From assembly GCA_037447605.1 (NCBI GenBank), contig CM074819.1, positions 124,001-188,000 of the forward strand: a stretch of 64,000 nucleotides of DNA. Direction: 5' to 3'. The first letter of the stretch is position 1. Every line of letters begins with the position of its first letter. This stretch comes from Zygnema circumcarinatum SAG 698-1b (Eukaryota; Plantae; Zygnematophyceae). The translations under genes were made by a program, and so were the position numbers. The notes below the pieces were generated by a model, which was not told the DNA's origin, made no database searches, and worked only from the letters and a program-made list of their open reading frames with translations. Positions 1,478-23,100 of this stretch are shown one piece after another.

Positions 1478-4400
1478 TGTAACGAAAACTCGCCTCTTCA
1501 AATCGCTACGAATAACAACACACCCCGCCAAGACTGGAGTTTTCGCCAAGAGGGCGAAAGCGAGAGTTTCGCAGTGGCGGCGCAGCTCTCGTCGTAAAAC
1601 CGTGTATACCGGTATCGCTGGTTGGATGACGACAGCCACCCACTTTACGCTTCCCCCGCTGGAACCCTCCTACCAGCATTGGTGATCGGAAGCTGTGGCC
1701 GCCCAATGGCGCACTGCCACGCATCCTTCACTCGAACGGGTCGAGGTGTACAACGCATTTAACGCCACCGCGATTCTGCCGCCAGCGACGCCGCGCGCCA
1801 GACGTTGCTGCACCCGCTGATCCTACGCTACGGCCAGCGGGTCCGACGACAAATCAGTCCGCATCAACGCAACCTCGTAGTGTACCTGGACGACTACATG
1901 CCCAAAACGTAAGGCGCGAAGATGTGGTCGAGATTCCGATCCTCTCACACGGCCACGATACATATATGTCTCAAGATATCAGCGCCGCACGTAACCCTGC
2001 AACCTTCTCGCAAGCCCTCGATCCCGTGACCCCCTCGTCCTAGTGGTCCCCAACGCCTTGGCCACACTCGGCCCGCCAGTGGTGAGAGTACTAGGACGAG
2101 CGCGCTTCCTAAGTACACCTCCCGGCAGGATCAGGCAGCCAGCTACATTACTCTCAGAAAATGTGAACGCCCTCGCTCACGGTGGGGGTAAGAAGGCAGC
2201 CAGAAGTTTCAACGCACGCCAGCTCTAACTCTACGTGATAACCTGGAGGGCTCAACATAATCCCGGGCCAAGTCCCTTTCCGAAGTTGCGCCACGAACGC
2301 CAGAAACCCCTGCCGCCCTCGCTGCCTCCGCGCCCTCAAGGCCTCCCGCAAGACAGCTTGATGAGCTCCCGCAATTGGTTAAGTTGCTCCTGCCCATGTG
2401 CTATATGTTCAACCCCTGCTGAAGCCCAACCACTTCAATGGTGTATCGTGACGGGAAGAGTTTAATTTCACAATACGGCAAGGCTTGAATGGTTTCAACT
2501 TCATACCTGCTCACCGGCCAAGTTCCACCGGTGGGGAGGTGGTCGATTTCTCCCATCGCTACTTGTAATCTAAAGAAACCCAATATGAAAGACCGGATGC
2601 ACCTTCACGTGATGAAATCCAACCCGTAGTTTACATCATTCGCCCACCCCCGAAGCGTCCCATGAAGCGGGCCACGGCCACGGTTCCGCCAGTGCTTGAG
2701 TCTCAAGTTCGCCGTATTTCTAGCAACACCTCACGCCTCATCAAGGTGAGTTGGGTACCTGCGACGGCCAACATGCCTTTTGTCGCGGATCGTCAGCTAG
2801 CGTATGTCCGCTGCGTTCTCGCAAATACGGACATTAGCCTGACAAAAAGATCTGGATCAAGGGAGGTTGAGTCCCATCACCTCTCGCCTAAGGCGTCGGG
2901 GGTCTGCGGGACGATGTTCCACTTGGGATCGTGGGCTGGATCCCTTGGTTGGAAGGAATTTAGGGGATGCTGACCAAAGTTCAGGAAGAAAGGGGTGGTA
3001 CCAATGGACTCCTGGAAAGCATTATTGATGGCATACTCGCCCACCGGGAGCAGTCATTCCACCCATCCACGTAGTCCCATATACAATGCCTGGAGGTAAT
3101 CCTCCAGATCCTCGTTTCACCCGCTCCGGCCCGCCATCGGTTTAAGGGGGTGGAAAGTTGCATCAACGTACCGCCTCGTCCCTACGATTTTTGAGCACTT
3201 CCGGGCCCGCAAATGGCCGGGTGAATCGTGGATCACGGTCAGACACAATTTCTGACTGAAGACCATGCTGGATCCACACTTTGTCAACATATAACCGTGC
3301 AATCTCGTCGGCCCCAGCTCTCTTGGTAGTTGGTGCAAAATGCACCATCTTGTTGAGCCGATCGGCTGTGCTGACGCAGGACCTGAGTCATGCCCCCGGA
3401 GGTGTCACAGCTTGAAGATCCGTGATCAAGTCCATACCCACACCGGCCCCATTTCCCGGGAAAAGCGAGGTGCTAGGATGCAACCGCCGTGATCCCGCCT
3501 GCGGGGTTTGCTCTCGCCGGACAAGCTGGACAAGCCAGTACATACGCTATTGATCCCTCGAGAGTCCGTAGCCACCGTAATCCCTGAGCAGCGGCCTCAC
3601 GCGTTTTGGCAACTCCCATGTGACCCTGCACGGAGGATCATGTAGCTCACCCAGAATATCGCCATACGCTTCCTCGCCTTTGGGCACCACTCAATCATAG
3701 CCGCGGTACCAAAAATCCGTCCTCGGACAATCACTTTGTCCTTATAGCCATTACCTTGGCCATCCAGTAGTCAAAGGATCACCAAGATACCCTCCCGAAT
3801 CATCTCTGCCCTCGGTGATTAGAGAGTAGGGAGGGTTGGATCGCTGGCCACCGTGGAGGGATCTATGACAAAGCATACCGGAGACTAGAGACTGTAGCTG
3901 GCCGCCCTCACTGGCGCCATTGGTCTCGCTCCACCAACACTGAGTCGACGAAGCACTATCCGCAAGATGCCGAGGCCGCCACTCAGCTGGTTCAAGCATT
4001 CAAATTCTTCCCGCCCCATAAACCCCACCGCGCCAAACCTTGGGAGGAACTCGCATCAAGGCTCGCCGCCAGACAAGGTCCGGTAGAGAGAAACGTCAGC
4101 GGGCGGTGGTCAGTGACCAGCGTGACCGCTTCCGCCCCCTCTAAATAGCACCGCCATGTCCTCAGGGCGTGGACCACTGCAAGCAGTTCCTGTTCCGTTG
4201 CAGAATAGTTGAGCTCAGCGGGATTCATTTTGCGACTTTCATACGCCAAAGGTTGGCCACCTTGAAACAAGACGGCGCCCAAGGCGAATCCCGAAGCATC
4301 ACAAACCACTTCATAAGTGCTTGGACGGGTCCGGCTAAATCCGAGAGTGGGTGCGGTACTGTGTTGCATGGCGACACCTTCGAATGCATCCCGCATTCAG

Positions 4401-7400
4401 GGTTCATGTAAAGGGACACCGAACGCAGCGTCAAATTAGTCAAGTGGAGCAACCAATTTACTAAACCCTTGGATGAACTTACCTAAAATAATTCGCAGTT
4501 TCCTAAAAGACCTTTAACCGGGTGCAAGTCGTTTCCAAGGGCTCTTCAAGTTTCTACCAAATAAATTTTGGCGTGATCAGTCAAGGCCCTCGATCATCAG
4601 AGGATATGCCCAAGATAAAGCAACTCTCGTTGCATGAAATGACACTTCTTCCTCTTGGCATAAAACTGGTGTTTCCTCGTGGTCTCAAACACTTTTCTAA
4701 CGCGTTCAAGATGCTCCTCCTCCGGCCTATCAAGACAGATATCATCGGTGTAAACCAAAAACAAACTCGCTCCATGCCGTAATGTAACACTTCGCTCATG
4801 ACAGCCCGAAAGTTGCCGAGCATTAGTCAATCCAAAGGGCAACACCTTATATTGAAATGACCAATCTGGCTGGCCCCAACGCAGCGTTGCACACGCCTTC
4901 CGTGACGCTGATCCGGCGATACCCCCCAGCAAGATCAAGTGATGTGAACACTTTGGCGCCGCGGAAGATTTATCCAACAGATCATCGACATACGCGGGTA
5001 AAGCAAATCGCATTCTTTACGGGCGCATCTTGAGCCATTGGCCAATCAATGCATCCTCAACGGTCATCTTTCTGCCAACAAACAAGATGGGCCCAAAGTG
5101 GGCTTTGGCCGGGCTCTATCCAAACTTCTGTCCCGTAGTACTAACTGCTTTCACGATTTCCTCGGCTTCCTTTGACTTAACCGATAGGGGACGCACGCCA
5201 AGGCGCTTTTGCTCGTGCTCAAGAGGATTGTGTGCCCCACCCCTAGACGGGTGGCAACCCTCTCGGGAAGGTCGTCGTGAAAACATCCTCGAATCCTCAT
5301 CCTCAACAAAGGTTGATTTGGGTGTGAACGCCGAGCACATCCCAGACGTGATCCGCCATTCCCCATCTTCGCTACGCACATCCTCGCGGCTGCCATGACA
5401 TGCACCATGAACAAGGTGTGCACCTTCCTTAACCGCTGTGGCCAATTGTATAGCCGAGCACGAGTGGCGAGTAGCAAAGCTGCCGGATACAGGACGGGCT
5501 CGCCAGGTGCGTGGTAAGTCAGCCTCGCCACCACCGTGCGTAATGCAAACGGGACGTAGTGCTTCATTTGTGCTTTTGACCATGGTTAACCAAGCACTCC
5601 CCAAAATAATATCAGCACTGGGGTCAGCTTGTGTTGGCCACACTTGACCGCCTGAGTGATCGAGCTTGATCTTTGAGTGTGACGCCGCTGCAGATCTCGC
5701 CCTTTAAAGGCCCATCCCCTAAAGTAACACTTTCAATGGGACCGTGGTCAACCCAAATCTTCGGTGAACGCTAGTAACTAACAAAGTTAAGACCGCCTCC
5801 GCATTCAAGAAGAAGACGGGCTGGGGTGGCCATTGGTCGCATCTTCGGATGAAGGTCAGCGGCACGATGGGCAAGGTGGAACATAGATTGCACTATATGC
5901 TTAAGGTCGAGGATCTGTGCCGCCTCCACACCAATGTGTAGGTGAGCCAACCAAATAGCCGGTGGGATCCCCTTCCATCTTCGCACTCAACGCGGTGCCC
6001 TTCTCAATCGCTTTCACCAACCGCCAGCGGGTATTGGGAAAGGCGCGGAATCGCCATGTACCGAGGAACCAAAGACATGCAAATTTCATGAAGTGTTTCC
6101 CATGACACTTGTGCTAATTCATGGCACACATTGCATGAGAAAATCACGCTCATGACACAGGATAAAGACATGCCAAGCACCATTCATCACTACATCCATA
6201 AACCTGCATGAGTCACTACAAAGGGCGTGGGGAAAAGAGAATGGAAGAAGGAGCACATCAAACACAAAAGATCTTGCACCCCCAAAGTCCCGCCCACCAA
6301 GCTTAAGAAGAACGTCCGAGGTTCTAAGAAACAATAAATTTTTATCCTTGATGGCAGCCCATTCCCTTCCCCTACTTAAGATGTCCACCTCAAAGAATCC
6401 ACCCCTAAGCCGCCGTGGTTAGGTTTTCCTACTTTGCCCTTCTTGTCCAAGGCTGGTAGGCAATCCCGGCCTTATGCCTTCCTTACAGCCGAAACATTTG
6501 TTTTCCCACGCATTTTCTCCTTACTTCCTCCTGAGTCAACCCTCGCGTCAGCAGTAGTTGGGTGGGCTGCAGCTACTTCCCACGCTCGGGCTGTTTCTTC
6601 CCCGCCATCTTAAGTGTGCCGTAGGTCCCGCCTTCCACGCACTGTTACGCTGCCCGACCTCCGCTGGCCTGAAGGGCCTCGCGACGCCGCTAGGGCGGTG
6701 TCCAATCAATGGTCGTGATCAAAGTACAAATTTTAGTCACGGTCCCACCTGCGTGAGTCCCATGGGTTGCTCCTCACCGCCTCGTGTGTGTGGCTTCAAG
6801 CCATTCTCGGTGGAAAAGAACTCAGCCTGACTAGGCTCGCGGGAGTGGTGATTTGAGGTACCACTGACGCTAAAAGTCTCTAAACCCGCCGGGACAATCA
6901 CGCCGCTTGGGACCATAAGTGTCTGGAATTTATCCTGCCTCCTGCCTGATCCAAGACCCTTAAAGTGATCGCATAGTTCATCTCAACTTATCCCACCGCC
7001 CCCAATTCATCAGAGGGCCCCCTCATACACACGGCATGCTGGCTCCTCTCGGGAAGCAAGGTAAGCAGCTTACCCAATCGAGTGGGGACAGTTGGTCGCC
7101 GTAAGGTAGTTCTTCGCTTGATCTAACCACTGCCAATCGAACAGCCCGTGGTAGATGTTCGCCCCAAAGGAAAGAGGGGCCACTTGGCCTCCCGACCTGC
7201 CTGCATCTCGCAGGGTCATGAGGAGCAACTGAGACCGGGATCTCCTCCCGCCTCAAAGCACGCCGTGACGGGGGTCCCCACCGCCAAGGGTTCCGCCACC
7301 CCGCGGGGGTGACTGGAAAACTGGGGCCCCACTGGCCGGCCGCTTCCTACATGGGGCGCTCCGATTGACGACGCTTTACCTGGAAAGTGGTTTGCCTAAC

Positions 7401-8611
7401 CCTTCCCCTGTGACCTCCGCTGCATCCACTTCTACAACTGAGGTCGGGCATACCTTCGACCCTTCCTGGAGCTCGGCCCGAAAAGGCTCCTCGGACCTAT
7501 TGGGAGCGCGGTTCACCAGCGCGACCGCGAGCTCTTATGTCGCCCACCTGCCTCGCATAAAGCTATGGTGGCGACGCCGCTGCTTCTTACATTCGCCCAG
7601 CTTCGCCGCATCTTCTTTCATCTTTCGCGGATGCCCACCGCGGATGTGGGCCCCCATCATGGGGATCGGGCGGATACCAGCGCCGAGCCACGCCCTGACG
7701 CGTGGAAAGGGGTGGGCACCTGGGATGACCTTGGTCAATGGGTTTCCTGGATCGCCCTCCCATGGGGGTGCCGCAGCCTTCCGAAGCCTTCTCCATCACT
7801 CGCCCCGGGATGTAGGGGGTGGGCGCCCTGGTGGGGCCCTCGGGTCCTCCTACCGGGCCAGTGGTCACTATGACCTGCGTGTTCTCTTCAAAGAGAAGAC
7901 CGCTAACGCCGCCTGATACCAAATGTAACGACTGAAAACCGCCTCTTCAGCCTGCGCGGAATAACACACCAGTACCCGGAGTTCAGCGAGAGGGCGAGAG
8001 TGAGAGAGCTTCAGAGAGTGGCAACCTCGTCGTGGGTGCAACCGTGATGCCGGCATGTTGGTTGACGACGACGGGGCCACCCACGCCTTTACGCTTCCCC
8101 GCTGGAACCTCCTACCGCAGGGAGGATTGGAAGTGGCCGCCCAATGGCAGTACCGCCACGCGTCCCTCTCACTCGAATGGGCCGAGGTGTACACGCACGC
8201 ACGGCCACCGCGATTTCCCGCTGGCGCTGGCCAAGCGACGGGCGCGTAAGCCGCTGCACGCCGCACGGCCGATCCTATGCTGCCAGCGGGCGCTGGTTCT
8301 GACGATAAATTCATTCGCATAACGGTGAATCTGTAATTGTATTTCCCGACGACGGGCTGGCTGCTCAAAAACGTAAGGAGGCGATGTGGTCGGATTCCGT
8401 GATCCTCGACCACACGGCATGACGCATACATATGTCTCAAAGATATCAAGGCCAAGATGGAACCTTGCAACCTTCAAGAAGCACATCCCGTGACCCTGGT
8501 CCTAGGTGGTCCCCGACGCCTTGGCCACTCGGCCCGCGCCCGGGGTGAGAGTACTAGGACGGAGCGCGCCCTAAGTACACCTCCCGTGGGTGACTGTAGC
8601 GTTTCGCTACA
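1478..8611 (-). mobile_element. Full-length chromovirus (Ty3/gypsy) M inserted in gag of A, heavily frameshifted
   Basis: LTRs 1478-~2147 and 7924-8611, both beginning TGTAACG on the + strand. PBS revcomp CTGATACCA at 7913-7921. Remnants of gag (CCHC ~6460-6500), RT (QYKVLPFGLTNA), RH (CDASGFALGAVL) and INT (HPVFH). TSD CCGAG at 8612-8616; left copy degraded as CCGAAAG. Confidence 0.85.
2350..2510 (-). pseudogene. Chromodomain at the C-terminus of the M integrase
   Basis: With frameshifts the minus strand reads PPPPVELAGEQxYEVETI…LKWLGF…STW…NLTNC, a chromodomain pattern following the GPY/F region. Confidence 0.7.
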
Positions 8612-9342
8612 CCGAGGGATACCTCTACGCCACTCGTTGCCCGCTGGAGGAGTGGGTGAACTTTGCCTACCCATCCTTGCGGGGGCAGGCTTTTCGGGTG
8701 TTCACCAATCTCCGCGATACGATCGGGAGCAGTTGGACGCGCTTTGCTGCCGAGATGAACAAGCACTTCGGAGTGCTGGACCCTAGCATGGAGGGTCGGA
8801 GAAAGTACGCTACGTTGGTGCAGACGGGCAGTGTACTTCAATTTCTTCAAGACTGCCGAGACACGGTGTCCACGATTACACGTGACACCCCTTCGCAGAC
8901 GGAGCAGTTCTACAGGTTCTCCATGGGGTTGAAACCTCACATTGCTAACCAACTGTTGCTGAATCCCGCAACCTCTAAGCCCTGGGTGGCGGCGGACGCA
9001 GATCTCTTTTATGCGGCCGCTGTGAATGCGGATGCGCAGGCCGTCGCGGTCGACCCCTGGCGTGGGACTTGGTCCCCTGTAGCCTCTGGGTCGAACACAC
9101 CGCGACGGGAAGCCCCACCGTTCCGGGCCCCACGCGGGGGCGGACGGGGACCCAAGCGCCCCGCGGAGGCCCCAGCCCAGACTTCAGTGGCAAAGGTGCC
9201 AAAGTTGACGCCCCAGGAGGCGGACAGATTGAAGAAGGAGGGCCGATGCTACCGATGCCGCCAGGCGGGGCACTTGGCCCGTGATTGCCCCAAGGGTCAG
9301 CAGGGGTCTGGCCCGGAAAACGGGCCCCCATCTGCAGTCTAG
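8612..9342 (+). CDS. gag: Gag of element A (C-terminal half, capsid region plus CCHC knuckle)
   Basis: EGYLYATRCPLEEWVNFAYPSLRG… and CYRCRQAGHLARDC; homologous to the gags at 9998 and 18416. Confidence 0.85.
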
Positions 9343-9997
9343 AGGTCGCCGCAGATGGTAGTGGTAGAGGGGAGGAATTGAGTGTTGGTGTAGCGTAACG
9401 CTACAGCGTGACCCTGGAGGCGTACTCATAGTGATACTATGACTATCCCTTCATCTCAGCGCCTAGCGGATAGGTTAGGACGCTGCCAAGACCGCAGGAG
9501 GTCTTGGGCTCGATCCTTGTGGCGGGCAAAGGATCTCTTTTGGNNNNNNNNNNGGGGACCCTCCCCCTCCAGCCACTGGTAAGCCCACTGCCCCTCCTCC
9601 TGTGGTCTTAGCTGATACAGTAGGAGAGGCGGCAGCTCCTAGGGGGGGAAATAGAGGAGCTGCTCGGGCCAGATGAACAGTACCACCTGCCTGGCCCCGC
9701 CTCGCCTGCAGACGGGACCATGGCGCTCCCAGCCTGAGGTGGCGTTAGCTCCGCCTCCGGCGCCGCCGCTTTCCTTCGCAGGAGCAGCCGCGGCCGCCCC
9801 TTGAGGGAGAGGCGACCGCGCCAGCAGCAATCCACCTCGCTGGTGCTGCCGGGCGACGTGGCTTACTCACATTGGTGGGTTCGCGTTCCCCGGGCGTGCG
9901 GATCCTCCTCCGGTGAAATCGGGCGAAGGTTCCCCCGATCTCCTTATGGGGAGAACGGCCGAATTCCGACTGCCCAATTGATCATTGGCTGGGGCAG

Positions 9998-10732
9998 GTG
10001 CGTGGGTACCTGTGTGCTACCCAATGCCCTCCCGATCAATGGGTGAACTTTGCTTCACCCGCTTTGAGGGGCGCGGCATGGAGTGTCTATGCCAGCCGCA
10101 AGGCTTTAATCGGAAAAGACTTTGAGAAGTTCGAGTCGGAACTTCTCAAACACTTTGGCATCCTGGATCCCAGTGCTGTTGCACGGGACAGGTTCCAGTC
10201 GCTCATGCAGACTGGAAGCGTGGCTGAATTCCTACGGGAATTGCGTGCGGCTTGGGCTTCAATTACCAAGTTCCCACCTGGACCCGAAGAATTCTTCTTC
10301 CGGTTCAGCCATGGATTGAAGCCGTACGTTCGGAAACAGCTTCGGCTGAATCCTCGTACCTTGGAACCTTGGGGACCTATGGATGATGAGCTGATGTTTG
10401 CAGCTGCAGTCCAAACTGACGTTGCGCCTACAGATGGTGCAGGGCCTTCCCGTCCCCCGCGTGCGGACATAGTGGACCAACCGCGGAAGCCTGGCGGGCC
10501 GAGCGGTCGTCCAAAGGGGAACGGCAAGAGGAAGGCAACTTCCTCTCATCCTCAGCAGTTTCAACGGCCTCCTACGCCGAAACTGGCTCCACAGGAGATG
10601 GAGGCTTTGAAAGCGGAGAACAAGTGTTTCCGCTGCAGGAAGGTGGGGCATCGGTCTTACGATTGCCCATCTTTCAAGAAGGATCGCAAGGGGAAGGGGC
10701 CGGCGGAAAACGGCTCCCCACCAGCAGCTTAG
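9998..10732 (+). CDS. gag: Gag of element B (true start lies upstream in a frameshifted region)
   Basis: GYLCATQCPPDQWVNFASPALRG…CFRCRKVGHRSYDC. Confidence 0.85.
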   Translation: MRGYLCATQCPPDQWVNFASPALRGAAWSVYASRKALIGKDFEKFESELLKHFGILDPSAVARDRFQSLMQTGSVAEFLRELRAAWASITKFPPGPEEFFFRFSHGLKPYVRKQLRLNPRTLEPWGPMDDELMFAAAVQTDVAPTDGAGPSRPPRADIVDQPRKPGGPSGRPKGNGKRKATSSHPQQFQRPPTPKLAPQEMEALKAENKCFRCRKVGHRSYDCPSFKKDRKGKGPAENGSPPAA

Positions 10733-11409
10733 GAGTCTCTGCTGGTGGGCTTGACAGTAGAGGGGGCAGCTTGTTAGCTGCTATCACTAGTGTAGAATGT
10801 TGTATCCCAAGGACAAATGACATTCTAAAAGTGATTGGGGGAGTTTTCAGCGGGAATCTGTTGTTTGTGTGCGATGCATTCCCTGCTGATTATTCATTCC
10901 TACCTTCTTTGTCGGTGACTCCAACAGTATTTCCGAATGCTGTCTTGCTGAATGAATGGCATGTGGTTATCTTGAATGCCATGGGCAGTGCTGCCTTAGT
11001 GCAATGTGCATTTGATGCCTTGCGCTTGCTGCGGTCGAAGGACCATGTGCTCAGTCTGCGAGTCTTACTTCCACAACATGTGGCAATAAGGGCTTATCCA
11101 CAGACTGAGTGGAGAATGGTAAAGCTATGGAAAAAGGGCTTCTCCCTTCTTAGGTGGATGCAGGGATCCCCCACCAGTGCGCTGGTGAAGTCCCCTCATT
11201 CCCTTGTGTGGAGGACTGCGCGTCCTCACGCACCAAATGTGCTACGGTCCATTTTCCACGTGGCCCATCGTGCAATGACCTTCCAAGGTTCAGCCGACGT
11301 ACCCTCGCCAGCCATTCTCATTGACACTGGCGCTGACGCTAACTTGTTAGCGCTAGCCTTTGTCGTGGTCGCTAGGTTTGGCAAATTCAGCCTCATTCCG
11401 CTAGTGTAA
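10705..11409 (+). CDS. Pol N-terminus of B: extra domain plus aspartic protease (-1 frame relative to gag)
   Basis: Open -1 frame from GGAAAAC, leading to the protease motif ILIDTGADAN. Confidence 0.7.
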   Translation, partial: GKRLPTSSLGVSAGGLDSRGGSLLAAITSVECCIPRTNDILKVIGGVFSGNLLFVCDAFPADYSFLPSLSVTPTVFPNAVLLNEWHVVILNAMGSAALVQCAFDALRLLRSKDHVLSLRVLLPQHVAIRAYPQTEWRMVKLWKKGFSLLRWMQGSPTSALVKSPHSLVWRTARPHAPNVLRSIFHVAHRAMTFQGSADVPSPAILIDTGADANLLALAFVVVARFGKFSLIPLV

Positions 11410-11992
11410 CTTTCGGGATGGACGTTAATCGGCCAGATTTCGGCAGCGCCGGGCCGTTGAATTGAAGATTCCAGTCTTACTCCTCGCGGTCAACTGCTTG
11501 CTGACGCGATAGCCCGTGAACGCATCTTTATCTTGGGGAGCAAATGGCTGACGCTTATGGGCGCTCAGTTAGATTTTGTTGTCCTTAATTGCGTCCTCCG
11601 CAGTAAAGGAAGACGCATGACGCTGCAACCAGGCACTCCTTCGGGACCAGCCTCGTCGCGTTCATCTTTGTCGTTTCTGTGCTCCGCCATGCAATTGGGC
11701 AGAGCACTAAAAACGAGTAGCATCTTGTTTATGGTGCAAGCCGCGACGGCAACCGGTGACGCCTTCGCACGGGACCAGGAGTGGCAACCCACCAAGGGTG
11801 AAACAATGCCAATCGCCCCAACTGTGTTTCCAACCTTTGTTGAAAAGGCTCGGAGATGTGCCCCCTGTACGACATCTCGCCAAGGGCTCCTGCCTCCAGC
11901 CGTAGGGGTGGGGCATTCATACCCCTTGAGCTGCAATCGTAAAACCTCCTTGGAGGCCAATCTATAGGCTTAGTCCGAAGGAGACTGAGGAG

Positions 11993-12844
11993 ATGCGAAA
12001 GCAACTCGCTAACCTGCGTGATAAGGGCTGGATTGAGCCCAGCCAGAGTCCCTTTGGGGCTCCCATCCTCTTCGTTGGTAAGAAGGATGGGTCTTTGCGT
12101 ATGTGCATCGATTATCGAGCACTCAATAAGATCACGGTAAAGAACAGGTTTGCTTTACCGCGCATAGATGATCTTCTGGACCGTCTGCAAGGGGCGAAGG
12201 TGTTCACCTCGCTCGACCTTGCGCAGGGGTACCATCAGATCCGTGTCACGGATGCTGATGTTCCTAAGACGGCATTTCGGACGCCAATCGGTCATTTCCA
12301 ATATAAGGTGCTACCTTTTGGACTGACCAACGCTCCGGCGACATTCCAAGCTGTGATGAACGAGATGTTCGTCGGCATGGATGAGTTTGTCTTGGTCTAC
12401 CTGGATGATATCCTGGTATTCAGCAAGACGAACGCTGAGCACCTCGTGCATGTGCGCAAGGTGTTCGAGGTGCTGCGAAGACACACGTTTTATGCCAAGC
12501 GGAAGAAATGTAACTTCATGCAACGGGAGTTGTTGTATCTTGGGCATATCTTGAATGATCAGGGCTTGAAGCCCGATCCAGCCAAGGTGTCTGCTGTTAA
12601 GACATGGGCAGTACCGACTGATCTTCATCAGTTGCGATCTTTTCTTGGATTTGCAAATTATTTTCGTAAATTTATCCAAGGCTTTAGTAAGTTGGTAACT
12701 CCGCTTACCAATTTGACACGTTCCGGTGTCGCTTATGCATGGACACCAGAGTGCCAGACGGCCTTTGATGGTGTTAGACATGCGCTTGTGACAGCACCTA
12801 CGTTGAGGTTGGCTGATCCGCGGTTACCATATGAAGTGGTATGT
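11993..12844 (+). CDS. pol: Reverse transcriptase of B (cut by gap)
   Basis: LRMCIDYRALN, YKVLPFGLTNAPATFQ, YLDDILVFS. Confidence 0.92.
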
Positions 12845-13046
12845 NNNNNNNNNNCCGCTCCCGATCCTCCATGCTGGTAGGGGGTTCAACGGGGGGAGCT
12901 TAAGGGGGCTGCGCCCGGATGGGAGACCATCCGAGCTCTTTGTACCAGCATTGAGCTCACGCTCCTCTGACTCTCTCTCTCCTTCTCTCTCTTTGACGCT
13001 TAGACTTTCAGAGCAGCCTGCCGGGGGGGCAGGTTGTTACAGTTGG

Positions 13047-13719
13047 TGCTGCCAGGCGTCGGGACTTTGTTGTACCTTTTTCAAGTGATTTATTGAATAT
13101 TATGGGCCGGCAGCCCCTTGAGTCAGATATCTTTGTGTTGCACTGCCCGGATTATCTGAATGACTCTTTATTCTCCCTCTCCACCCGAATGACCTCCCTT
13201 GAATTTGCTGATGCCCAATGGCATGAACCAGCTGCAATCTGGATCTTGAATCCTACAGGCGCTGCTGATTTGCTGGATAGTGTGCATGCGGCCTTGCGGC
13301 GGGGGCGCATAACGGTGTTGGTGTCGGCTGTGCATATATTACTGCCCCAGCATGTCCCCATTACATGTTTCAGTCATGCTAATTGGAAACTGGTCCGACT
13401 GTGGCGAAAGGGACACCCGATGGTGTGTTGGGGCGAATCCAGACACGGTACCTCGTGCGTACTACCGTACCCTGTCCTTTGGCGCACAACACACACTGAT
13501 GCAACCCCTGTCCTCAGATCCATGTTTCAGCGATCCCACTGTGCCATGACCTTTTCTGGGGTTGTAGCCGGCAAAGGTGTTATCATCTTGTTCGATTCAG
13601 GTGCTGACGATAATTTTCTGAATTCCTCGTTTGTAAAGATGACGTCACTCGTCCTTGCAGACCACTCCGACACGGTCACATTTGGAGATGGTCGAAAGGG
13701 GCAAATTCTCGGCTGTGTG
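13047..13719 (+). CDS. Pol N-terminus of A: extra domain plus protease start
   Basis: Open frame continuous across the B TSD from 9315; protease motif IILFDSGADDNF. Confidence 0.8.
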
Positions 13720-14333
13720 TGTTGGTGCAGGGACTCCTCCACTGCTGCCGGCTTCTCCACTCGCATCACCTTCCATCGGAGTTCGCGTTCCAATCGATGA
13801 TGACATTTCCCAAACTCTCACATTCACTCATAGCCCATTTTACTCACAGAGTGAACCTCTCAGAATATGCACAGCGGAATAACAGAGAGAAAAGGATAGG
13901 AGAAAGCTCTCGGCTCTAAAACTCCTTAATAATAATCTTATCAACACAAATGAGAGACCCCCTCTCAAATAGCCCAATAAACTCAAAAGCCCACTACCTC
14001 GCAGCACAAGCAAGTGTAATGTTCAGCAACACGAGCATCAGCTTCTCAGAGTCTACAATAGCTACGTTGATAATCAGAAGTTAAAGATTTTCAACAAAAC
14101 AAAACAACACACTATGTACTATGTCACAACATCCGTGACACTACCATACAACTAAGCNNNNNNNNNNGTCGCGCCTCGTCACTTCTGACTCCGCCGCGCC
14201 GCGCCTCTTCCACCGACCAAATGTCCGTACCGCCGCCTACTAACTTAGGCGCGCACCGCCGCCAAGGAAACACACAACACAAACACACAAAACTAATGTT
14301 CCAACAAAACATGCTAACTATCATACACTAACA
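13720..14333 (-). mobile_element. Ty1/copia family G LTR (solo LTR or gap-collapsed element, G1) inside the A protease
   Basis: TGTTGGTG…CACTAACA, near-identical to the LTR at 60282-61295; TSD GTGTG at 13715-13719 and 14334-14338. Confidence 0.9.
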
Positions 14334-16707
14334 GTGTGACAACCCGGTTACGGATACAATCCTTTTCCGGGCAGATCCGTTGTCTGGTTACCAGTCTGAC
14401 CCTTGGCATCGACTTGATCCTGGGTAGTAATTGGCTGCACACAGTAAGAGCCATGATGGATTTTTCGGTGCCAAACTGCGTTGTCCGCAGTGGCGCCCAA
14501 CGCGTTACCTTACTCCCAGGTATGCCCACGGTTGCACCCCACCTCCATCCAGATGCGGCGCACTTGTGCTCCGCCATGCAGGTGGCGAACGCCGTAAAAT
14601 CAGGTAGTATGCTGTTCTATGTGCAACTCGTGGATGAAATAGAGTCTGTTTACGACGGCGACCAGGAGTGGTTACCCACTGCCTCGGAGTCGTTACCACC
14701 GGTACCACCGGCGATGAAATCTTTACTCGATGAATTTCAAGATATTTTTCCAGAGGACCTCCCCTCATGACTACCACTTGCGCGTGGCGTGGGGCATACT
14801 ATTCCCCTCGAGCCTGAGCAGAAGCCACCTTGGCGTCCGATCTATCGATTGAGCCCCAAGGAGACAGAGGAAATGCGGAAACAATTGACTAACCTGCGCT
14901 CCAAGGGCTGGATTGAACCCAGTCAGAGCCCATTCGGCGCCCCCATCCTCTTCGTAGGAAAGAAAGATGGCTCTTTGCGAATGTGCATTGACTATCGGGC
15001 ACTAAATAAAATTACAATAAAGAACCGTTATGCATTACCTCGTATTGATGATTTATTGGATCGGTTGCATGGGGCAAAGGTGTTCACATCGCTTGATTTG
15101 GCCCAGGGCTACCATCAGATCCGTGTCACGGATGTTGATGTACCAAAGTCTGCATTTCGTACGCCTATTGGACATTTCCAATACAAGGTACTGCCCTTTG
15201 GGTTGACGAATGCACCGGCCACCTTCCAGGCTGTGATGAACGAGATGTTCAACAGCATGGATGATTATGTCTTGGTATACCTCGACGACATTCTGGTTTT
15301 CAGCAAAACAGAAAAGGAACACTTGGCCCACGTTCGCAATGTGTTGGCAGTATTACGCCAGCACACGTTTTACGCGAAACGGAAGAAATGTCAGTTCATG
15401 CAAAGGGAACTTCTCTACCTTGGACATATCCTCGGAGAGGACGGCCTCAAGCCCGACCCGGGCAAAATTGCAGCGGTCGGCACCTGGGCTGTCCTTAAGG
15501 ATCTGCATCAGTTACGTTCCTTCCTTGGCTTCGCGAATTATTTTCGGAAATTTATTCAGGGATTTAGTAAGCTGGTTACACCACTTACCGAACTAACCCG
15601 ATCCGGGGTTAGCTACACCTGGACAGATGATTGTCAGGTGGCGTTTGAGGGTGTCAAACACGCCCTCATTACCGCACCTACTTTGGTGCTGGCAGACCCT
15701 ACCAAACCCTATGAGGTGGTTTGCGATGCGTCGGGGTTCGCACTTGGCGCTGTCCTTTTTCAGGAGGGCCAACCACTGGCTTATGAGAGTCGGAAGATGA
15801 ACCCGGCCGAACGAAACTACTCGGCAACCGAGCAGGAACTGCTCGCAGTTGTTCACGCCTTGAGGACATGGCGTTGCTATTTGGAGGGAGCGGGGGCAGT
15901 CACGCTGGTCACGGACCACCGTCCCTTGACCTTCCTCTCCTCCCAACAGACATTGTCAAGGCGGCAGGCCCGTTGGTCCGAGTTCCTTCAGAGATTTGAC
16001 TGCCAATGGGTGTATCGGCCAGGAAGGTTGAATGTTGCCGACCCATTGAGTAGACAGTCTAGTCATCTTGCCTGGATGGTGCACTCGTCGACCCGAGTGT
16101 TGAAGGAACAAAGCGGTCGAGAGGGTGGGCCGGCCAACCCCCCTTCTCCCTTCCCAACGTGTCTAGCCATGGATACCCAAACCAGCGCGATGGTCAACCC
16201 TCCCGCTCTCTCTGAACTTAGACAGATGATTCGGGAGGGCTATGCTGGTGATCCTCTGTTCTTGGACGGCCAGGGTAATGGCTATAAGGACAAAGTGCTG
16301 CGCTCCAATGACGGGTTTTGGTACCACGACAAGCAGTTGGTCGTGCCCAAGGCAGGGACTGTACGGCATCTCATTCTAAGTGAGATGCACGATCCTCCTT
16401 ACAGAGGCCACATGGGAGTTGCCAAAACCTCCGAGGCAGTGCTCCGTGAGTTTTGGTGGCCGGGACTCACGAAGGATGTGTCGGCGTATGTGCTCGCCTG
16501 TCCAACCTGTCAACGTGACAAGCCTCGCACTGGCCGGATTCCTGGTCAGCTTCAACCACTCACTCCACCTTTTAGGAAGTGGGAGAGCATCGGTATGGAT
16601 CTGATCACAGATTTACCAAAAACCCCACGGGGTCACGATGCGGTTATGGTGTTTGTCGACAGTCTCAGCAAGATGGTGCATTTCGCACCGACTCGAAAGG
16701 CCGCTGG
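14334..16707 (+). CDS. pol: Pol of A: protease end, RT, RNase H, integrase Zn-finger and core start (one stop near 14770)
   Basis: 643-aa ORF with YLDD, CDASGFALGAVL, TDHRPL, H-H-C-C and WESIGMDLITDLP. Confidence 0.93.
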
Positions 16708-18415
16708 TGTTAGTGTATGATAGTTAGCATGTTTTGTTGGAACATTAGTTTTGTGTGTTTGTGTTGTGTGTTTCCTTGGCGGCGGTGCGCGCCTAAGTTA
16801 GTAGGCGGCGGTACGGACATTTGGTCGGTGAAAGAGGCGCGGCGCGGCGGNNNNNNNNNNAGAGAAGGGTGGTGCTGTGCAGGGTGCCAGCACGTCGGCA
16901 AATGAAGGAGCCGAGCCAGCGGCAGCGATGAGTGAGCCAGCTGATGATGGAGAGACGCCCGTGGAGGCGCATGCGGAGGAGCCGCAAAGTTCAGCGGAGA
17001 CGATTCCCCTTCACACTCACTCCAGTGGTGAAGAGGAGAACTCAGTGGAGACGGTCCCGCTTCACGCGCAAGATTCAGAGGATCTTGAAGCGGCCGAGAG
17101 GGAGGCAATGTTAGCGAACATGCCCCCAGGTTTTGTTCCCGGACTCTACTTCTACCCGAGAGGACGAAGTGCGAAGACTGTAGCGAACTGAACGCTACAG
17201 ACACCACGGTGCCGCCGGCATCCTGAGGATCTCCGTACGGTTCGGCCGTACAAGCCGTCCGTACAGTCGTACGGTCTAGCCGTACGGATCCGTACTACCC
17301 GTACGGGCGGTACGGACTGACGGCGATTCTGCGGCGTCGCGCGTCGCGTTCGAGATCGGAACGCGACCACGACCGCCGGTCGCTATACGGAGTGACGTGT
17401 CACGGTCACACATTGGGAATGCTGGTGACCGTGACCGGCCTCTCATACAACTGGCATTGGACCAGCCGATTGGCCACGTGGCATCGCGCCATTGGCTAGC
17501 CCTGCTCCCGGTCCCTTACGCTGGTAAAGGGTTCGACGGGGGGNNNNNNNNNNAGAGAAGGGTGGTGCTGTGCAGGGTGCCAGCACGTCGGCAAATGAAG
17601 GAGCCGAGCCAGCGGCAGCGATGAGTGAGCCAGCTGATGATGGAGAGACGCCCGTGGAGGCGCATGCGGAGGAGCCGCAAAGTTCAGCGGAGACGATTCC
17701 CCTTCACACTCACTCCAGTGGTGAAGAGGAGAACTCAGTGGAGACGGTCCCGCTTCACGCGCAAGATTCAGAGGATCTTGAAGCGGCCGAGAGGGAGGCA
17801 ATGTTAGCGAACATGCCCCCAGGTTTTGTTCCCGGACTCTACTTCTACCCGAGAGGACGAAGTGCGAAGACTGTAGCGAACTGAACGCTACAGACACCAC
17901 GGTGCCGCCGGCATCCTGAGGATCTCCGTACGGTTCGGCCGTACAAGCCGTCCGTACAGTCGTACGGTCTAGCCGTACGGATCCGTACTACCCGTACGGG
18001 CGGTACGGACTGACGGCGATTCTGCGGCGTCGCGCGTCGCGTTCGAGATCGGAACGCGACCACGACCGCCGGTCGCTATACGGAGTGACGTGTCACGGTC
18101 ACACATTGGGAATGCTGGTGACCGTGACCGGCCTCTCATACAACTGGCATTGGACCAGCCGATTGGCCACGTGGCATCGCGCCATTGGCTAGCCCTGCTC
18201 CCGGTCCCTTACGCTGGTAAAGGGTTCGGGACTGGTTTTACAAGGGCGGGATGAATGCAAGAGGGGGTCTTTGGAAGGGGGGTACTTGCAATCATTCCAG
18301 AAACCAGCATTACGTTTAAGTGACTTAGTCTCTAGCAGGCTTTGGGTGTTGTGCTCAAGGCTTGTTACATTTTGGTATCAGAGCTTGTGTTTCTCCTGCT
18401 AAGATTGTTTGTTTA

Positions 18416-19966
18416 ATGGAGGCATTTCCAGAATTTCCGCCTTTTCCGCCTTCCAGCCCTGAGGACCAAGAGGATCACCCGATGGAGGAGAATCCAGAGG
18501 AGGATGAGACGGCAGATCCGCGGGGTCCTTCTCTCATCGACTACAGCCCGTCTCCTTGCAGCAGCCCGGAGCAAGCGCCTCCTGCACCCATTCAGAATGA
18601 TCCTCCACCGCTACCTGCGGCTGAGACGAACATCACTGCCGGAGCAGCCTTGAACCTTCAGAAAGACGTGCGAGGGGTTCAGGCCAAGATTGGTCAGTAC
18701 GAGACTCTCCTTGTGACCCAAAGACAGGAGATGGCGCAGATGGAGCGCAACGTTCAGAAGAAGATGGACAAGCTCCGTGCGGACCTACGAGGGGATTTGG
18801 CCCTCGCCATGAAGAACTTGACGGCAGCAAAAGGTACGTCCAACATTCCCCAGGCCGAAGCCGTTGAGGCAGAGAAAGATCTTCCTGGGGTAGCTGATGG
18901 GGTAGCACCATCAATTGCCACGAGAACTGCGACCCAACCTGTTGCCTCAAGCAGCAGACGGTCGTCTGGACCCCCTGCCTCTTCTACAGGGGGGAGTCAT
19001 CCTAACGGGGGTGGCGCACCTTCCAGTGGTGGTGGATCCCCTTCGGGATCACCTTCTGGTGATGGGGGACTTCCTGGAACAGGATCCGGCCCCTTGGTCC
19101 CTCCTCAAGATTGGTCTTCGAGGAACAGGGCCAAGGTAACCCCCATTTCTCCTTGGGGAGAACACCCTGCAACCGACTGTTCTATTGAACAGTGGTTGGG
19201 CCAAGTGAAGGGTTACCTTCACGCCACGAATTGCCCACAGAAGGAGTGGGTGAATTTCTCATATCCATCACTCCGCGGCGATGCCTATCGTGTATACGAG
19301 AGCTTAGCCACTAAGATCGGGAGTGATTGGGAGAAATTCCGCAAGGAACTTGAGCGTCATTTTGGGGTTTTGGATCCTGGAATGGAAGCGCGTCAAAGGT
19401 ACCACAGTATGGTACAGACTGGTAGTGCCAAGAAGTTCTTGCGAGATCTGTGTATGACGGTGTCACTCATAAAGACACATCGTCCTACTGATGAAGCAGT
19501 GTTTTATCACTTCTGGATGGGCCTGAAGCCGCATTTGAAGAAGGAATTGCGATTAAATCCACGTACATCTCAACCGTGGGAGCCCGTGGATGCAGAATTC
19601 TTCTATGCGGCGGCTTTGCAAGCTGATTCCTTTCCTGGCAGCAGCGCCGGACCTTCACGTCCACCACCTCCAGAGGCAGACCGGAAGCTCTTCCCTTCAT
19701 TTCCGAAGCTTAAGGGGGCAAATCCGCAGAAGAGGAAGCCGAGTGCCACCTCTGCCCCACAGCCTTCTGCGAAGGTGCAGAAGCTTACTCCACAGGAAAT
19801 GGAGAAGATGAAGAAGGAAGGACGATGTTTCCGATGCCGGCAGTCTGGCCATATGGCGAAGGACTGTCCGCAAAGCATCAAGGACAAGAAGGGAAAAGGG
19901 CCGGGAAAAAAGTGCAACACCATGGAGGCAGGTGTAGGAGTCGCTGCGGCTGAGAAGATGGACTGA
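18416..19966 (+). CDS. gag: Gag of element C (about 516 aa)
   Basis: Open frame from MEAFPEF; coiled-coil-like and G/S/P-rich N-terminus, capsid region, CFRCRQSGHMAKDC. Confidence 0.88.
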   Translation: MEAFPEFPPFPPSSPEDQEDHPMEENPEEDETADPRGPSLIDYSPSPCSSPEQAPPAPIQNDPPPLPAAETNITAGAALNLQKDVRGVQAKIGQYETLLVTQRQEMAQMERNVQKKMDKLRADLRGDLALAMKNLTAAKGTSNIPQAEAVEAEKDLPGVADGVAPSIATRTATQPVASSSRRSSGPPASSTGGSHPNGGGAPSSGGGSPSGSPSGDGGLPGTGSGPLVPPQDWSSRNRAKVTPISPWGEHPATDCSIEQWLGQVKGYLHATNCPQKEWVNFSYPSLRGDAYRVYESLATKIGSDWEKFRKELERHFGVLDPGMEARQRYHSMVQTGSAKKFLRDLCMTVSLIKTHRPTDEAVFYHFWMGLKPHLKKELRLNPRTSQPWEPVDAEFFYAAALQADSFPGSSAGPSRPPPPEADRKLFPSFPKLKGANPQKRKPSATSAPQPSAKVQKLTPQEMEKMKKEGRCFRCRQSGHMAKDCPQSIKDKKGKGPGKKCNTMEAGVGVAAAEKMD

Positions 19967-20124
19967 AGGATTGCAGCTGCCGCCATCAGCTCTAGAGGCT
20001 TGTTAACCATAACCTCTTGACACCTCGAGTGACTGGACAGAGCCGATGACCATGATGCACCCAGTTTCACTGCATTTAAATGTGATTCCATTCTTGATTC
20101 CCTAATTGTGACTCTGACTCTTTC

Positions 20125-23100
20125 ATGAATGTTGTGATGAATGGAGAACAATTGACTGTTTGGATTTTGAATCCTTCAGGTAATGTGTCTCTTATTGATT
20201 GTACATTTGTTGCTTTACGGTTACAGCGCACCACTAATCATGTTTCAAGTTTGCATGTATTGATGCCTTTGCATGCTTCGATTGGGACTTTTAGCCATAC
20301 TAACTGGAAGTTGGTCAAGATCTGGCGAAAAGGACATCCCATGCTACATTGGGTGGATACTTCTACCAGTTTGCTGGTTGGATCGCCGTACCCTTTGATC
20401 TGGCGGACTTCATGTTCTCCATCATCGTATGTATTGCGGTCACTCTTCCACCTTGCACACCGTGCAATGACCTTTCAAGGATTCATTGGCGGCAGATCTG
20501 TAGTAGTTTTACTTGATTCAGGTGCTGATTCTAATTTCATTAGTGCTGTACTTGTTAAGCTTGTTGACTTGTCTGTCTCCCCTCTCACCGAAGTCGTGAC
20601 TTTTGGTGATGGAAGACAGGGTCAAATCCTTGGCACCATAACCACACGTCTGAAGATTCAGACTTACTCAGGGCAGATTCGGTGTTTTGTCACTAATCTG
20701 GCGCCTGGCCTAGATGTTATTCTGGGAAGTCAGTGGTTAACCATGGTCAAGGCTCAGATGGATTTTTCCATACCCACTTGTGTTTTGCGTTGTGGCGCAC
20801 GACGAATAACTCTGCGCCCAGGCATTACGACTTCAGATGCTGCTGAGCAGTCTGATACACCTTTTCAGTGTTCAGCCATGCAGTTGGCTAAAGCTGTTAA
20901 GGCAGGATGTACCTTGTTTTTGGTACAAGTCATGGATACCACGGAAGATGTTCATGACGAGGAACAAGAGTGGCATGTCACACCTACGGATGTGTTGTCA
21001 CCTGTTCCATCTCGGATCCAACCGTTGTTGGATGAATTCAGGGATATTTTTCCTGATGACTTACCTCGGGGATTGCCTCCGTCACGAGGTGTCGGGCATA
21101 CTATTCCCTTGGAACCTGGGCATAAGCCGCCGTGGCGGCCGATTTATCGGTTAAGTCCCAAGGAGACCGAAGAGATGCGTAAGCAACTCTCAAACTTGAG
21201 AGACAAAGGTTGGATTGAACCCAGCCAGAGTCCTTTCGGTGCTCCAATCCTCTTTGTGGGGAAGAAAGATGGTTCTTTGCCATGTAAATAATCCCACTAT
21301 CGGCACTAACAAGATAACCGTCAAGATCGGTAACGCTACCGCCATTGATGACTTGCTGGAGATATTGCAAGGTGTTGAATATTCACACCTATTGGTTGCA
21401 CAAGGCTATCATCAGTATTTGTGTGACGGATGCTGATGCACCTAAAGACGGCGCTTCGGACGTGGATCGTTATTTCCAGTATAAGGTTTTACCTTTTGGA
21501 TTGACTAATGCTCCAGCAACTTTCCAAGCCGTCATGAACGAAATGTTCATTGGCATGGATGACTTTGTTTTGGTGTACCTCGATGATATCCTCGTCTTTA
21601 GTAAGACAGTTGAGGACCATCTTCAACACGTGAGAAGGGTGTTTGAAGTTCTGAGGAAGCATCATTTTTATGCCAAGTGGAAGAAGTGTCACTTCATGCA
21701 GCGTGAGCTGCTTTACCTTGGGCATATCCTGAATGATCAGGGCATTCGACCGGACCCGGCTAAGGTGGTTGCGGTTGAGATATGGGAAGTACTGGCTGAT
21801 TTACATCAGTTGCGGTCTTTCCTCGGATTTGCGAATTATTTTCGTAAATTTATTCAAGGGTTTAGCAAACTTGTTACTCCCTTGACAGATTTGACACGTG
21901 CCGGTGTCACTTACACTTGGACGCCTGAATGCCAGCGGGCCTTTGAGGGTGTTAAACATGCCTTAGTCACCGCACCTACATTGGTGTTGGCAGACCCTAC
22001 CAAACCATATGAGGTGGTTTGTGATGCGTCCGGATTCGCTCTGGGAGCCGTCCTATTTCAGGATGGGCGACCTCTTGCGTACGAAAGTCGTAAGATGAAC
22101 CCAGCCGAACGCAATTATTCTGCAACTGAGCAAGAGCTCCTTGCAGTAATCCACGCCTTGAGGACATGGCGGTGTTATTTAGAGGGGGCGAAAGCGGTTA
22201 CGCTTGTCACGGATCATCGGCCGTTGACATTTCTTTCCTCTCAACAGACATTGACTAGGCGGCAGGCACGCTGGTCCGAGTTCCTTCAACGATTTGACTG
22301 TCAGTGGGTCTATCGACCAGGGAGGTTGAATGTGGCGGACCCATTGAGCAGACAGTTGTGACACCCAGCTGATGGATCGCGATTGGTGATGGAGGATGTG
22401 TTGAGATGAAGGGCCGCGCAACCCTGATTTTCCCTTTCCGGTATGCCTAGCCATAAACCACCGCACCAGTAGGACAGTCGACCCTCCTGCTCTCTCTGAT
22501 CTCAGACGGATGATTCAAGAGGGCTATACTGGTGATCCCTTGTTCTTGGATGGCCAGGGTAGTGGCTATAAGGACAAAGTGGTGCTCTCAACAGATGGGT
22601 TTTGGTATCACGGGACGCAATTGGTCGTGCCCAAGACCGGGGTTGTACGTCAACTCATTCTGAGTGAGTTGCATGATCCGCCGTACAGAGGTCATATGGG
22701 AATTGCCAAGACTCGTGAGGCACTGCTCCGTGAGTTCTGGTGGCCGGGGCTCACGAGGGATGTGAAGGCGTATGTACTCGCCTGTCCCATTTGTCAACGT
22801 GATAAGGCACGCACTGGCAGGATTCCTGGCCAGCTGCAACCCTTGACACCTCCTTTTCGGAAATGGGAGAGTGTTGGCATGGATTTGATCACTGATCTAC
22901 CTGTCACACCACGGGGTTTTGACTCCATCTTAGTGTTCGTCGATAGGCTCAGCAAGATGGTGCATTTTGCACCAACTACTAAGACAGCTGGGGCCGATGA
23001 GATGGCACGGATATATGTTGACAAAGTGTGGAGTCTGCATGGGCTTCAATCAGAGATTGTTTCTGATCGAGATCCCAGATTCACTGGACATTTCTGGAAA

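Follow-up and report, generated by a model that had tools for sequence, protein, structure and literature searches.

Adenine-methyltransferase (DAM) domains in LTR elements other than DIRS, including a chromovirus-like clade of chlorophytes, were first reported in May 2026 (bioRxiv 10.64898/2026.05.21.726589). As set out in that preprint, the screen was performed by hmmsearch at E<=1e-5, the DAM motif of transposable elements (TEs) is Asn-Pro-Pro followed by an aromatic residue, emphasis is placed on a conserved catalytic pocket, DIRS elements are proposed as the donor of the LTR-element DAM, and canonical TE DAM domains gave no activity in E. coli. These DAM-LTR elements resemble those analysed here in that a chromovirus backbone carries, within its polyprotein, a domain derived from prokaryotic adenine methyltransferases; they are reported to keep Asn-Pro-Pro-aromatic, whereas our copies are devoid of Pro-Pro-aromatic and show no match to the Pfam family PF05869 at E<=10. 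The DIRS1-like retrotransposons are likewise retroelements with a PF05869-type domain, but they encode a tyrosine recombinase and have the domain located elsewhere, while the elements reported here display an H2C2/DDE integrase and the gypsy gene order. As for the PF05869 Dam proteins of phages (Salmonella phage Chi gp52), they are the presumed ultimate ancestor, linked to our domain through DAM-type intermediates; there is, however, no direct sequence similarity between the two, and our domain lacks the motif and is embedded in a polyprotein.

Two other systems offer analogies. METTL14 and DNMT3L are catalytically dead partners with a methyltransferase fold, which have lost motif IV and are conserved for binding or scaffolding; their likeness to the domain described here would be functional only, and no homology is claimed. 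In betaretroviruses, the pro frame encodes a dUTPase, located upstream of the protease and downstream of the nucleocapsid, which is expressed by recoding. This analogy would be one of position only, the fold and family being different, and no dUTPase Pfam match occurs in the DNA that we analysed. A dUTPase or a second protease lobe was considered as a candidate identity for the domain and rejected, both being without Pfam support and the predicted fold being alpha/beta.

The window, that is, the whole 64-kb stretch of Zygnema circumcarinatum DNA under analysis, consists of short contigs scaffolded across 10-N gaps. Nearly all of it is made up of LTR-retrotransposon remains, with Copia-type pieces occupying much of the window outside the gypsy elements, and an Rfam scan of the window returned no family. 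Since the contigs are joined by such gaps, the copies of the domain termed A, B and C lie on separate contigs. No element is complete on its contig, and a repeat search gave inter-element similarity only. The contigs and gypsy genes concerned are the following:

9554-12844, + strand: contig with element B: gag, including a CCHC knuckle, and pol up to the first part of the reverse transcriptase (RT)
12855-14157, + strand: contig with the copy A pol fragment only
14168-16850, + strand: contig with the C-terminal part of a protease, RT, RNase H and integrase zinc domain
17554-23699, + strand: contig with element C, gag through integrase
9917..10732, + strand: gag of element B, Retrotrans_gag and CCHC knuckle
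10420..12844, + strand: pol of element B, with the domain, protease and first part of RT, truncated by the contig-end gap
12997..14157, + strand: pol fragment of copy A, comprising the domain and the beginning of a broken protease; the contig ends at a gap
14318..16850, + strand: pol fragment on the next contig, with the C-terminal part of the protease, RT, RNase H and integrase zinc domain
18329..19966, + strand: gag of element C, Retrotrans_gag and CCHC knuckle
20098..23699, + strand: pol of element C, with the domain, protease, RT, RNase H and integrase; a gap truncates it before any chromodomain
2394..6358, - strand: pol of element M, heavily degraded
8575..9342, + strand: gag of a further gypsy element, whose pol is removed by the gap at 9544

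The 14318..16850 fragment lies on the contig next to that of copy A, to which it may belong. Pfam searches revealed the Ty3/gypsy order gag-protease-RT-RNase H-integrase in B, C, the 14318-16850 fragment and M; the integrase of the window elements is of the H2C2 + rve (DDE core) type, and no Pfam match to a tyrosine recombinase was found in them. A chromodomain is present in the relatives P0122 and P0001 and in the P0134 element (see below). In the window it is out of sight, because the gap truncates element C before that point. When counted against two intact relatives, none of the four gypsy pol copies proved to be intact:

Element B pol: at least 1 frame change, 2 in-frame stops
14318-16850 fragment: 0 frame changes, 1 in-frame stop
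Element C pol: at least 3 frame changes, 1 in-frame stop
Element M pol: at least 6 frame changes, about 32 in-frame stops

An earlier note on this DNA had claimed that four of its elements carry a conserved segment upstream of the protease, and this was borne out. A tblastn search of the window with each copy's segment returned exactly four places, namely A, B and C on the + strand and M, in two frames, on the - strand:

13072..13542, + strand: copy A of the domain, a single open frame (tblastn core 13225-13551; loop N-P-T-G)
10804..11271, + strand: copy B of the domain, a single open frame in the pol phase, 3' of the gag stop (tblastn core 10963-11280; loop N-A-M-G)
20098..20463, + strand: copy C of the domain, the open frame covering the C-terminal ~120 residues only (tblastn core 20146-20472; loop N-P-S-G)
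5861..6358, - strand: copy M of the domain, degraded, with tblastn matches divided between two frames

Copy M entered the comparisons solely as separate pieces. The remaining three share 48-51% amino acid identity across about 105-110 residues (tblastn, E about 1e-32), and their alignment contains 37 invariant columns, including all the motifs quoted in the earlier note, namely W-x-L-N-[PA], L-[LM]-P-x-H, W-[KR]-[LM]-V-[KR]-x-W-[RK]-K-G, P-x-P-x2-W-R-T and LRSxF...AMTF. The domain is 110-160 residues long. About 45 extra N-terminal residues, weakly conserved, are common to A and B and occur also in the relatives P0001 and P0151, while the open frame of C is devoid of this part. At its other end, the segment stops at the first strand of the retropepsin, with the protease matches (Pfam and PDB) starting directly after it, at residue ~119-126 of C's frame.

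With regard to its position, a gag gene with a CCHC knuckle lies 5' of the domain in B and C (Pfam), such that the order is gag, domain, protease; the same order was found in loci L003, L004, L009 and L012. In B, C and L003, pol is read in the -1 phase with respect to gag, whereas in L004 the two genes share one phase and are separated by a single TAG. No canonical -1 slippery heptamer was found where gag and pol overlap in B and L003. As the domain lies 3' of the gag stop, it would be made solely as part of Gag-Pol. The placement given in the earlier note, between the gag-pol frameshift and the protease, is shown only for B and C and for the outside relatives L003 and L004, the contig of A containing no gag.

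Comparison of the three pairs among A, B and C showed pN values (0.30-0.41) well below those of pS, which was saturated (0.71-0.77), so that the dN/dS-type check put forward in the earlier note spoke against neutral evolution. Among the window families, the domain is 37-51% identical, as compared with 41-51% for Gag and 80-87% for RT. Since their RT nucleotide sequences differ by 20-30% and the segment has diverged to an extent like that of Gag, the copies represent separate families, each retaining the segment, and in these three families the frame of the domain is open across 105-160 codons. All the window copies being dead, the selection recorded in the domain is past selection. The existence of the domain, its conservation and its non-neutral evolution are thus confirmed.

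Using a 643-residue RT-RNase H-integrase open reading frame as query, we then collected relatives of the window elements. Chromoviruses carrying a domain in the same slot show about 46-67% RT identity to the window family, and in several of them the domain can be named. In P0169, a PF05869 match spans residues 50-115 (E 2.4e-6, 27.8 bits), with the protease downstream at 213-320; P0211 and P0237 also display a PF05869 match 5' of the protease (E 7e-5 and 1.8e-4). The scores of these three relatives, 21.7-27.8 bits, are slightly below the gathering score of 28.1. On their contigs, gag precedes a pol gene whose N-terminal part is the domain, and in P0169, P0211, P0237, P0134 and loci L009-L013 the domain lies, as in the window, between Gag and protease. 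These DAM-type relatives resemble, and may belong to, the DAM-LTR elements of the preprint (10.64898/2026.05.21.726589).

Other relatives carry the form of the domain found in the window. P0151 (67% RT identity), whose pol is directly 3' of a gag gene, has an N-terminus that matches the window-type HMM (E 3e-7 in a small set). P0001 comes from a metagenome contig that encodes a gag with CCHC and then a gene composed of the segment, protease and chromodomain; it is an internally deleted derivative in which the domain has been retained. A third situation is seen in P0125, P0131 and P0192, where the slot is filled by ~160-190 residues that resemble neither the window-type nor the DAM-type sequences to any detectable degree. 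In a neighbour-joining RT tree, which has no support values, the window family, P0122 and P0151 were nested with the DAM-type relatives P0150, P0136 and P0134. The Gag-Pol of Ty3 aligns with DAM-type Pol from the protease onward only, so the slot is empty in canonical Ty3, and the remark in the earlier note that canonical gypsy pol has no domain here holds for this element.

In order to compare the two forms, a DAM-type HMM was seeded with P0169, P0211 and P0237 and iterated within 120 relatives, the test group being kept out. It gathered 11 members, and ranked P0151 (1.6e-4), P0001 (1.6e-3), C (0.03) and A (0.09) next after its own family, all in collinear alignment. Scanning metagenomes with a DAM-type alignment of four sequences brought in loci L009-L013, which resulted in a 16-sequence profile. 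For the phage comparator, Salmonella phage Chi gp52 (accession via PMC9409062, confirmed as PF05869), 120 homologues were collected and 22 aligned. The alignments submitted to hhalign were ended before the protease, and the results were as follows:

A, B, C and P0001 against DAM-type: 94.7%, P 5.8e-8, score 51.1, 128 columns; permuted null 11.2 +/- 2.0, maximum 17.3
A, B, C, P0001 and P0151 against DAM-type: 96.5%, P 8.9e-10, score 61.8, 113 columns
Window copies alone against DAM-type: 41.5%, P 2.7e-4, score 30.1, 93 columns; permuted null 11.2 +/- 2.1, maximum 20.9
DAM-type against phage Dam: 50%, P 1.6e-4, score 33.7, 53 columns; permuted null 13.5 +/- 2.9, maximum 23.8

The scores of window-type against DAM-type are 9-20 standard deviations above the column-permuted nulls, in which composition is kept. 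When the five window-type sequences were compared with seven full-length DAM-type Pol sequences (1081 columns), the best match was to the N-terminal domain (63.5%, P 6.8e-5), and comparison of window-type with the four-sequence DAM-type domain alignment gave 49.5% (P 1.7e-4). Phage Dam aligns to the same N-terminal region of DAM-type Pol, including N-P-P-Y (hhalign P 8.9e-4). Only six columns are conserved in both window-type and DAM-type; they include the K-G turn, a Pro following the second core strand and another Pro further on. At the level of sequence profiles, these comparisons show the window-type domain to be homologous, via intermediates, to the N-terminal domain of DAM-type Pol. The link between DAM-type and the phage Dam profile stands at only 50% probability, an observation that counts against the main reading given below.

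All direct searches for a methyltransferase signature in the segment were negative. With the segments of A, B, C, P0001 and P0151, no Pfam family, PF05869 included, was matched at E<=0.1 or at E<=10, and the window open reading frames matched only the protease in the domain region. In PDB sequence searches, neither single copies nor a three-copy profile gave any match for the segment, such that the PF05869 and PDB checks suggested in the earlier note failed to support its proposal. There was also no match for the segment in PHROGs, for residues 1-130 of C's frame in a word-based protein search, or for the window-type alignment in a scan of JGI metagenomes. A profile search of 1.84 billion representative proteins retrieved a single match, P0001 (E 9e-14). 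Finally, hhalign of the window-type alignment against the 22-sequence phage Dam profile gave 0.1-0.2%.

The N-P-P-aromatic motif IV is not found in the window-type copies, where only the hydrophobic strand and the Asn are retained. The loops after the strand read N-P-T-G in A, N-P-S-G in C, N-A-M-G in B and N-A-Q-G in P0001, while P0151 has a His in place of the motif Asn. In the hhalign register, W-I-L-N-P of the window type is set against W-I-N-P-P, with the Asn residues one column apart; a one-residue loop shift would superpose them, and Pro-Pro-aromatic is missing in both registers. The earlier note had read in copy A the order D...W...W-x-N-P-P of adenine methyltransferases. What survives of this is that I-W-I-L-N-P and V-H-I-L-L-P align with the W-I-N-P-P-Y and V-x-V-P strands; the motif itself does not, N-P-T-G replacing N-P-P-aromatic. 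Erosion of the motif is by no means restricted to the window. Among the DAM-type relatives, the aromatic is kept only by P0169 (N-P-P-Y) and P0237 (N-A-P-F), the others having N-P-P-A, N-V-P-T, N-S-P-E and similar, so that the adenine-stacking residue has been lost in 12 of the 14 DAM-type relatives examined and in all window-type copies. Loci L009-L013 have no Pfam Dam match, yet they are clear homologues of P0169. Furthermore, no conserved Gly-rich or acidic cofactor-binding position was found among the 18 invariant columns.

In class I methyltransferases, motif IV follows beta-4, in an arrangement of strand, Asn, loop, helix and strand. Two AlphaFold2 runs were performed on one four-sequence alignment, with copy A and P0001 as targets. 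The copy A model had a pLDDT of 67 and a pTM of 0.65, with residues 11-90 at about 80-87, and the P0001 model a pLDDT of 60; both show an identical alpha/beta order of elements. In these models, the invariant I-L-N closes a predicted strand, followed by a short loop, a 15-residue helix, a strand ending in L-L-P and a beta-hairpin with the invariant K-G. Foldseek comparison with the PDB placed class I methyltransferases at the head of both lists. For copy A these were KsgA (best, E 2.9e-4), RsmD-like, PrmC, TrmK and MnmM, and for P0001 they were TrmK, DNMT3A, PrmC, FtsJ and fibrillarin; T4 Dam and EcoDam came further down the second list, in places 42 and 47. The matches are weak, all with TM <0.5, and dihydrofolate reductases are interleaved among them. 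A BFVD fold search gave no match below E 2.6e-3. Taken as predictions, the models are no more than suggestive of a class I methyltransferase-like fold. That they were built from four sequences, with pLDDT of 60-67, is a point against the main reading that follows.

Overall, we consider it probable that the window copies represent a DAM-derived domain at the N-terminus of chromovirus Pol, kept under selection and probably no longer catalytic. A chromovirus lineage would have gained, at the N-terminus of Pol, a DAM domain of PF05869 type and then transmitted it by vertical descent. Across much of the clade the catalytic loop would have decayed, entirely so in the window families, while purifying selection would have held the fold and a few structural positions as the families diverged; in the window lineage, the strand and loop of motif IV are still recognisable, with the Pro-Pro-aromatic part lost. 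The retained role may be non-catalytic, either that of a pseudo-methyltransferase binding nucleic acid or contacting chromatin, or that of a structural partner, within Gag-Pol, for the protease next to it. Judging from the motif only, methyl transfer would have been lost. That P0001 retained the domain along with gag, protease and chromodomain hints, although the argument is a weak one, at a role in particle or chromatin-related steps rather than in reverse transcription. Because neither the PF05869 profile nor the motif is matched, we do not file the domain as a PF05869 member; because it is homologous to recognisable DAM members, we file it as DAM-derived. The captured methyltransferase in a DDE-integrase LTR element that the earlier note had envisaged is thus supported as to ancestry and position, through the intermediates (hhalign 95-96%), but not as to activity, as the motif is absent. 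As far as its sequence indicates, the window domain would be methyltransferase-derived without being demonstrably a methyltransferase. A broader proposition, which we advance tentatively and with more doubt than belief, is that a whole clade of green-algal-type chromoviruses carries a pseudo-methyltransferase that has taken on a new, non-catalytic function, for instance recognising or tethering to adenine-methylated or nascent DNA, or organising Gag-Pol near the protease.

Other explanations have to be set against these. The domain could still be catalytically active, methylating adenine (or another target) by means of a non-canonical motif IV and acting on element cDNA, on an RNA:DNA hybrid or on flanking chromatin. 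Purifying selection on the domain, the preserved strand-Asn-loop-helix-strand core, the Asn invariant in A, B, C and P0001 and the methyltransferase-like Foldseek matches are all in line with such an enzyme, and the preprint (10.64898/2026.05.21.726589) argues that TE DAM domains retain catalytic potential. We nevertheless regard this as unlikely, given the missing Pro-Pro-aromatic and the His for Asn in P0151, the 18 invariant columns that include no Gly-rich or acidic cofactor-binding positions, the mere six columns conserved in common with DAM-type, and the invisibility of the domain to Pfam at E<=10. A different kind of explanation holds that we are dealing with a lineage-specific N-terminal extension of the protease, or a transframe spacer, unrelated to methyltransferases, whose DAM likeness comes from shared position and composition. 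Such a region would fit with the negative outcome of every direct methyltransferase search, with Foldseek TM values <0.5, and with the slot sequences of P0125, P0131 and P0192, which are unlike either group. It is very improbable in view of the hhalign probabilities of 95-96% across 113-128 collinear columns, 9-20 standard deviations over nulls that keep composition, which were obtained with alignments stopping short of the protease; the models, too, predict an autonomous alpha/beta fold and no linker.

Lastly, the domain might be a functionless, decaying DAM relic under neutral drift, an idea to which we attach hardly any likelihood. The catalytic motif is gone, divergence has been much faster than that of RT, C is without the N-terminal third and M is in pieces, all of which a relic would explain. 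Drift is, however, difficult to reconcile with pN well below saturated pS in all three A/B/C pairs, with the 105-160 codons over which the frame stays open in three families whose RT nucleotide sequences are 20-30% apart, with 37 columns invariant among A, B and C, and with P0001, which is internally deleted and still has the domain.

The DAM-derived, probably non-catalytic domain that we favour is not of a new kind, since DAM in chromovirus-like LTR elements is reported in the preprint (10.64898/2026.05.21.726589). What is new here is its cryptic, motif-less form, which HMM screens miss. The window stands at the opposite extreme to the pocket-preserving DAM: its domain cannot be named by Pfam, by PDB or by a search of 1.84 billion proteins, yet it is conserved among families. 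If this situation is general, surveys that apply a PF05869 threshold undercount DAM-carrying elements, and methylation alone cannot be the selective value of the domain. Should the clade-wide reading be true, DAM-derived LTR domains would be far commoner than HMM screens report, possibly including hosts scored as DAM-LTR-absent. Retrotransposons with chromatin-modifying domains of their own are a new topic, and one lesson from this locus is that an 'unknown ORF region' upstream of a protease is best set beside the corresponding slot of related elements before it is called new.

As to the backbone of these elements, the nearest named RT relatives belong to Closterium spp., Haematococcus lacustris and Astrephomene, and P0122, with an RT-IN that is 87% identical, ends in a chromodomain.

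We examined the state of motif IV, canonically Asn-Pro-Pro followed by an aromatic residue, in the outside relatives whose domain is related to PF05869 (DAM-type relatives). The aromatic residue has already gone in most of them (proteins P0134, P0136, P0150, P0171, P0181, P0201 and P0211, and loci L009-L013), the motif reading N-P-P-A, N-S-P-E, N-V-P-T or similar, and for several of these same relatives Pfam Dam gave no match. With both losses found outside the window, decay of motif IV is, as judged from the sequences compared, widespread across the clade and not peculiar to the window copies. Three other close relatives by reverse transcriptase (P0125, P0131 and P0192) carry, upstream of the protease, an N-terminal region of 160-190 residues, similar in length to that of the DAM slot, which matched neither the DAM-type profile nor the profile built on the window-type domain. 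This region may be an even more diverged form of the domain, or a different insert.

An internally deleted chromovirus derivative was found on an outside contig (L001, ENA ERZ26165376):

3412-4488, second gene of the derivative, DAM-derived domain and protease fused directly to an integrase C-terminal SH3 remnant and a chromodomain

This gene is devoid of reverse transcriptase, RNase H and integrase core. As regards the gag-pol arrangement, in the locus of the relative that keeps the canonical N-P-P-Y (L004, protein P0169) gag and pol share one phase and are separated by a single TAG (site 1514-1522), and in window copies B and C and in outside locus L003 pol lies in the -1 phase. A search of the gag/pol overlaps of B and L003 gave no canonical slippery heptamer.

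Aside from these copies, the window holds a third gypsy gag, identified by its Pfam domains, and Copia-type remains:

8575-9342, plus strand, gypsy gag (Retrotrans_gag and CCHC)
23710-24501, plus strand, Copia-type remains
30450-31085, minus strand, Copia-type remains
57520-60282, minus strand, Copia-type remains
62216-63471, minus strand, Copia-type remains

The third gag is 41-47% identical to the gags of B and C, and the pol that belonged to it is lost at a gap (position 9544). Among the Copia-type remains is a 919-residue open reading frame that encodes an integrase core, an SH3-like domain and RVT_2. The others are additional pieces of pol, a piece of gag with CCHC and Pol_BBD, and one isolated RNase H piece with a gap on either side.

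Within the scaffold, positions 16846-17145 and 17539-17838, spaced 693 nt apart, are 100% identical over at least 300 nt each, and both stretches start at a 10-N gap; this looks like one short contig entered twice. Strong compositional blocks are seen at 30-32 kb (GC skew about -0.25) and at 38-46 kb (GC skew +0.16 to +0.20), with an AT skew of +0.24 at 44-46 kb. Single Ns are clustered at 32148-32173.
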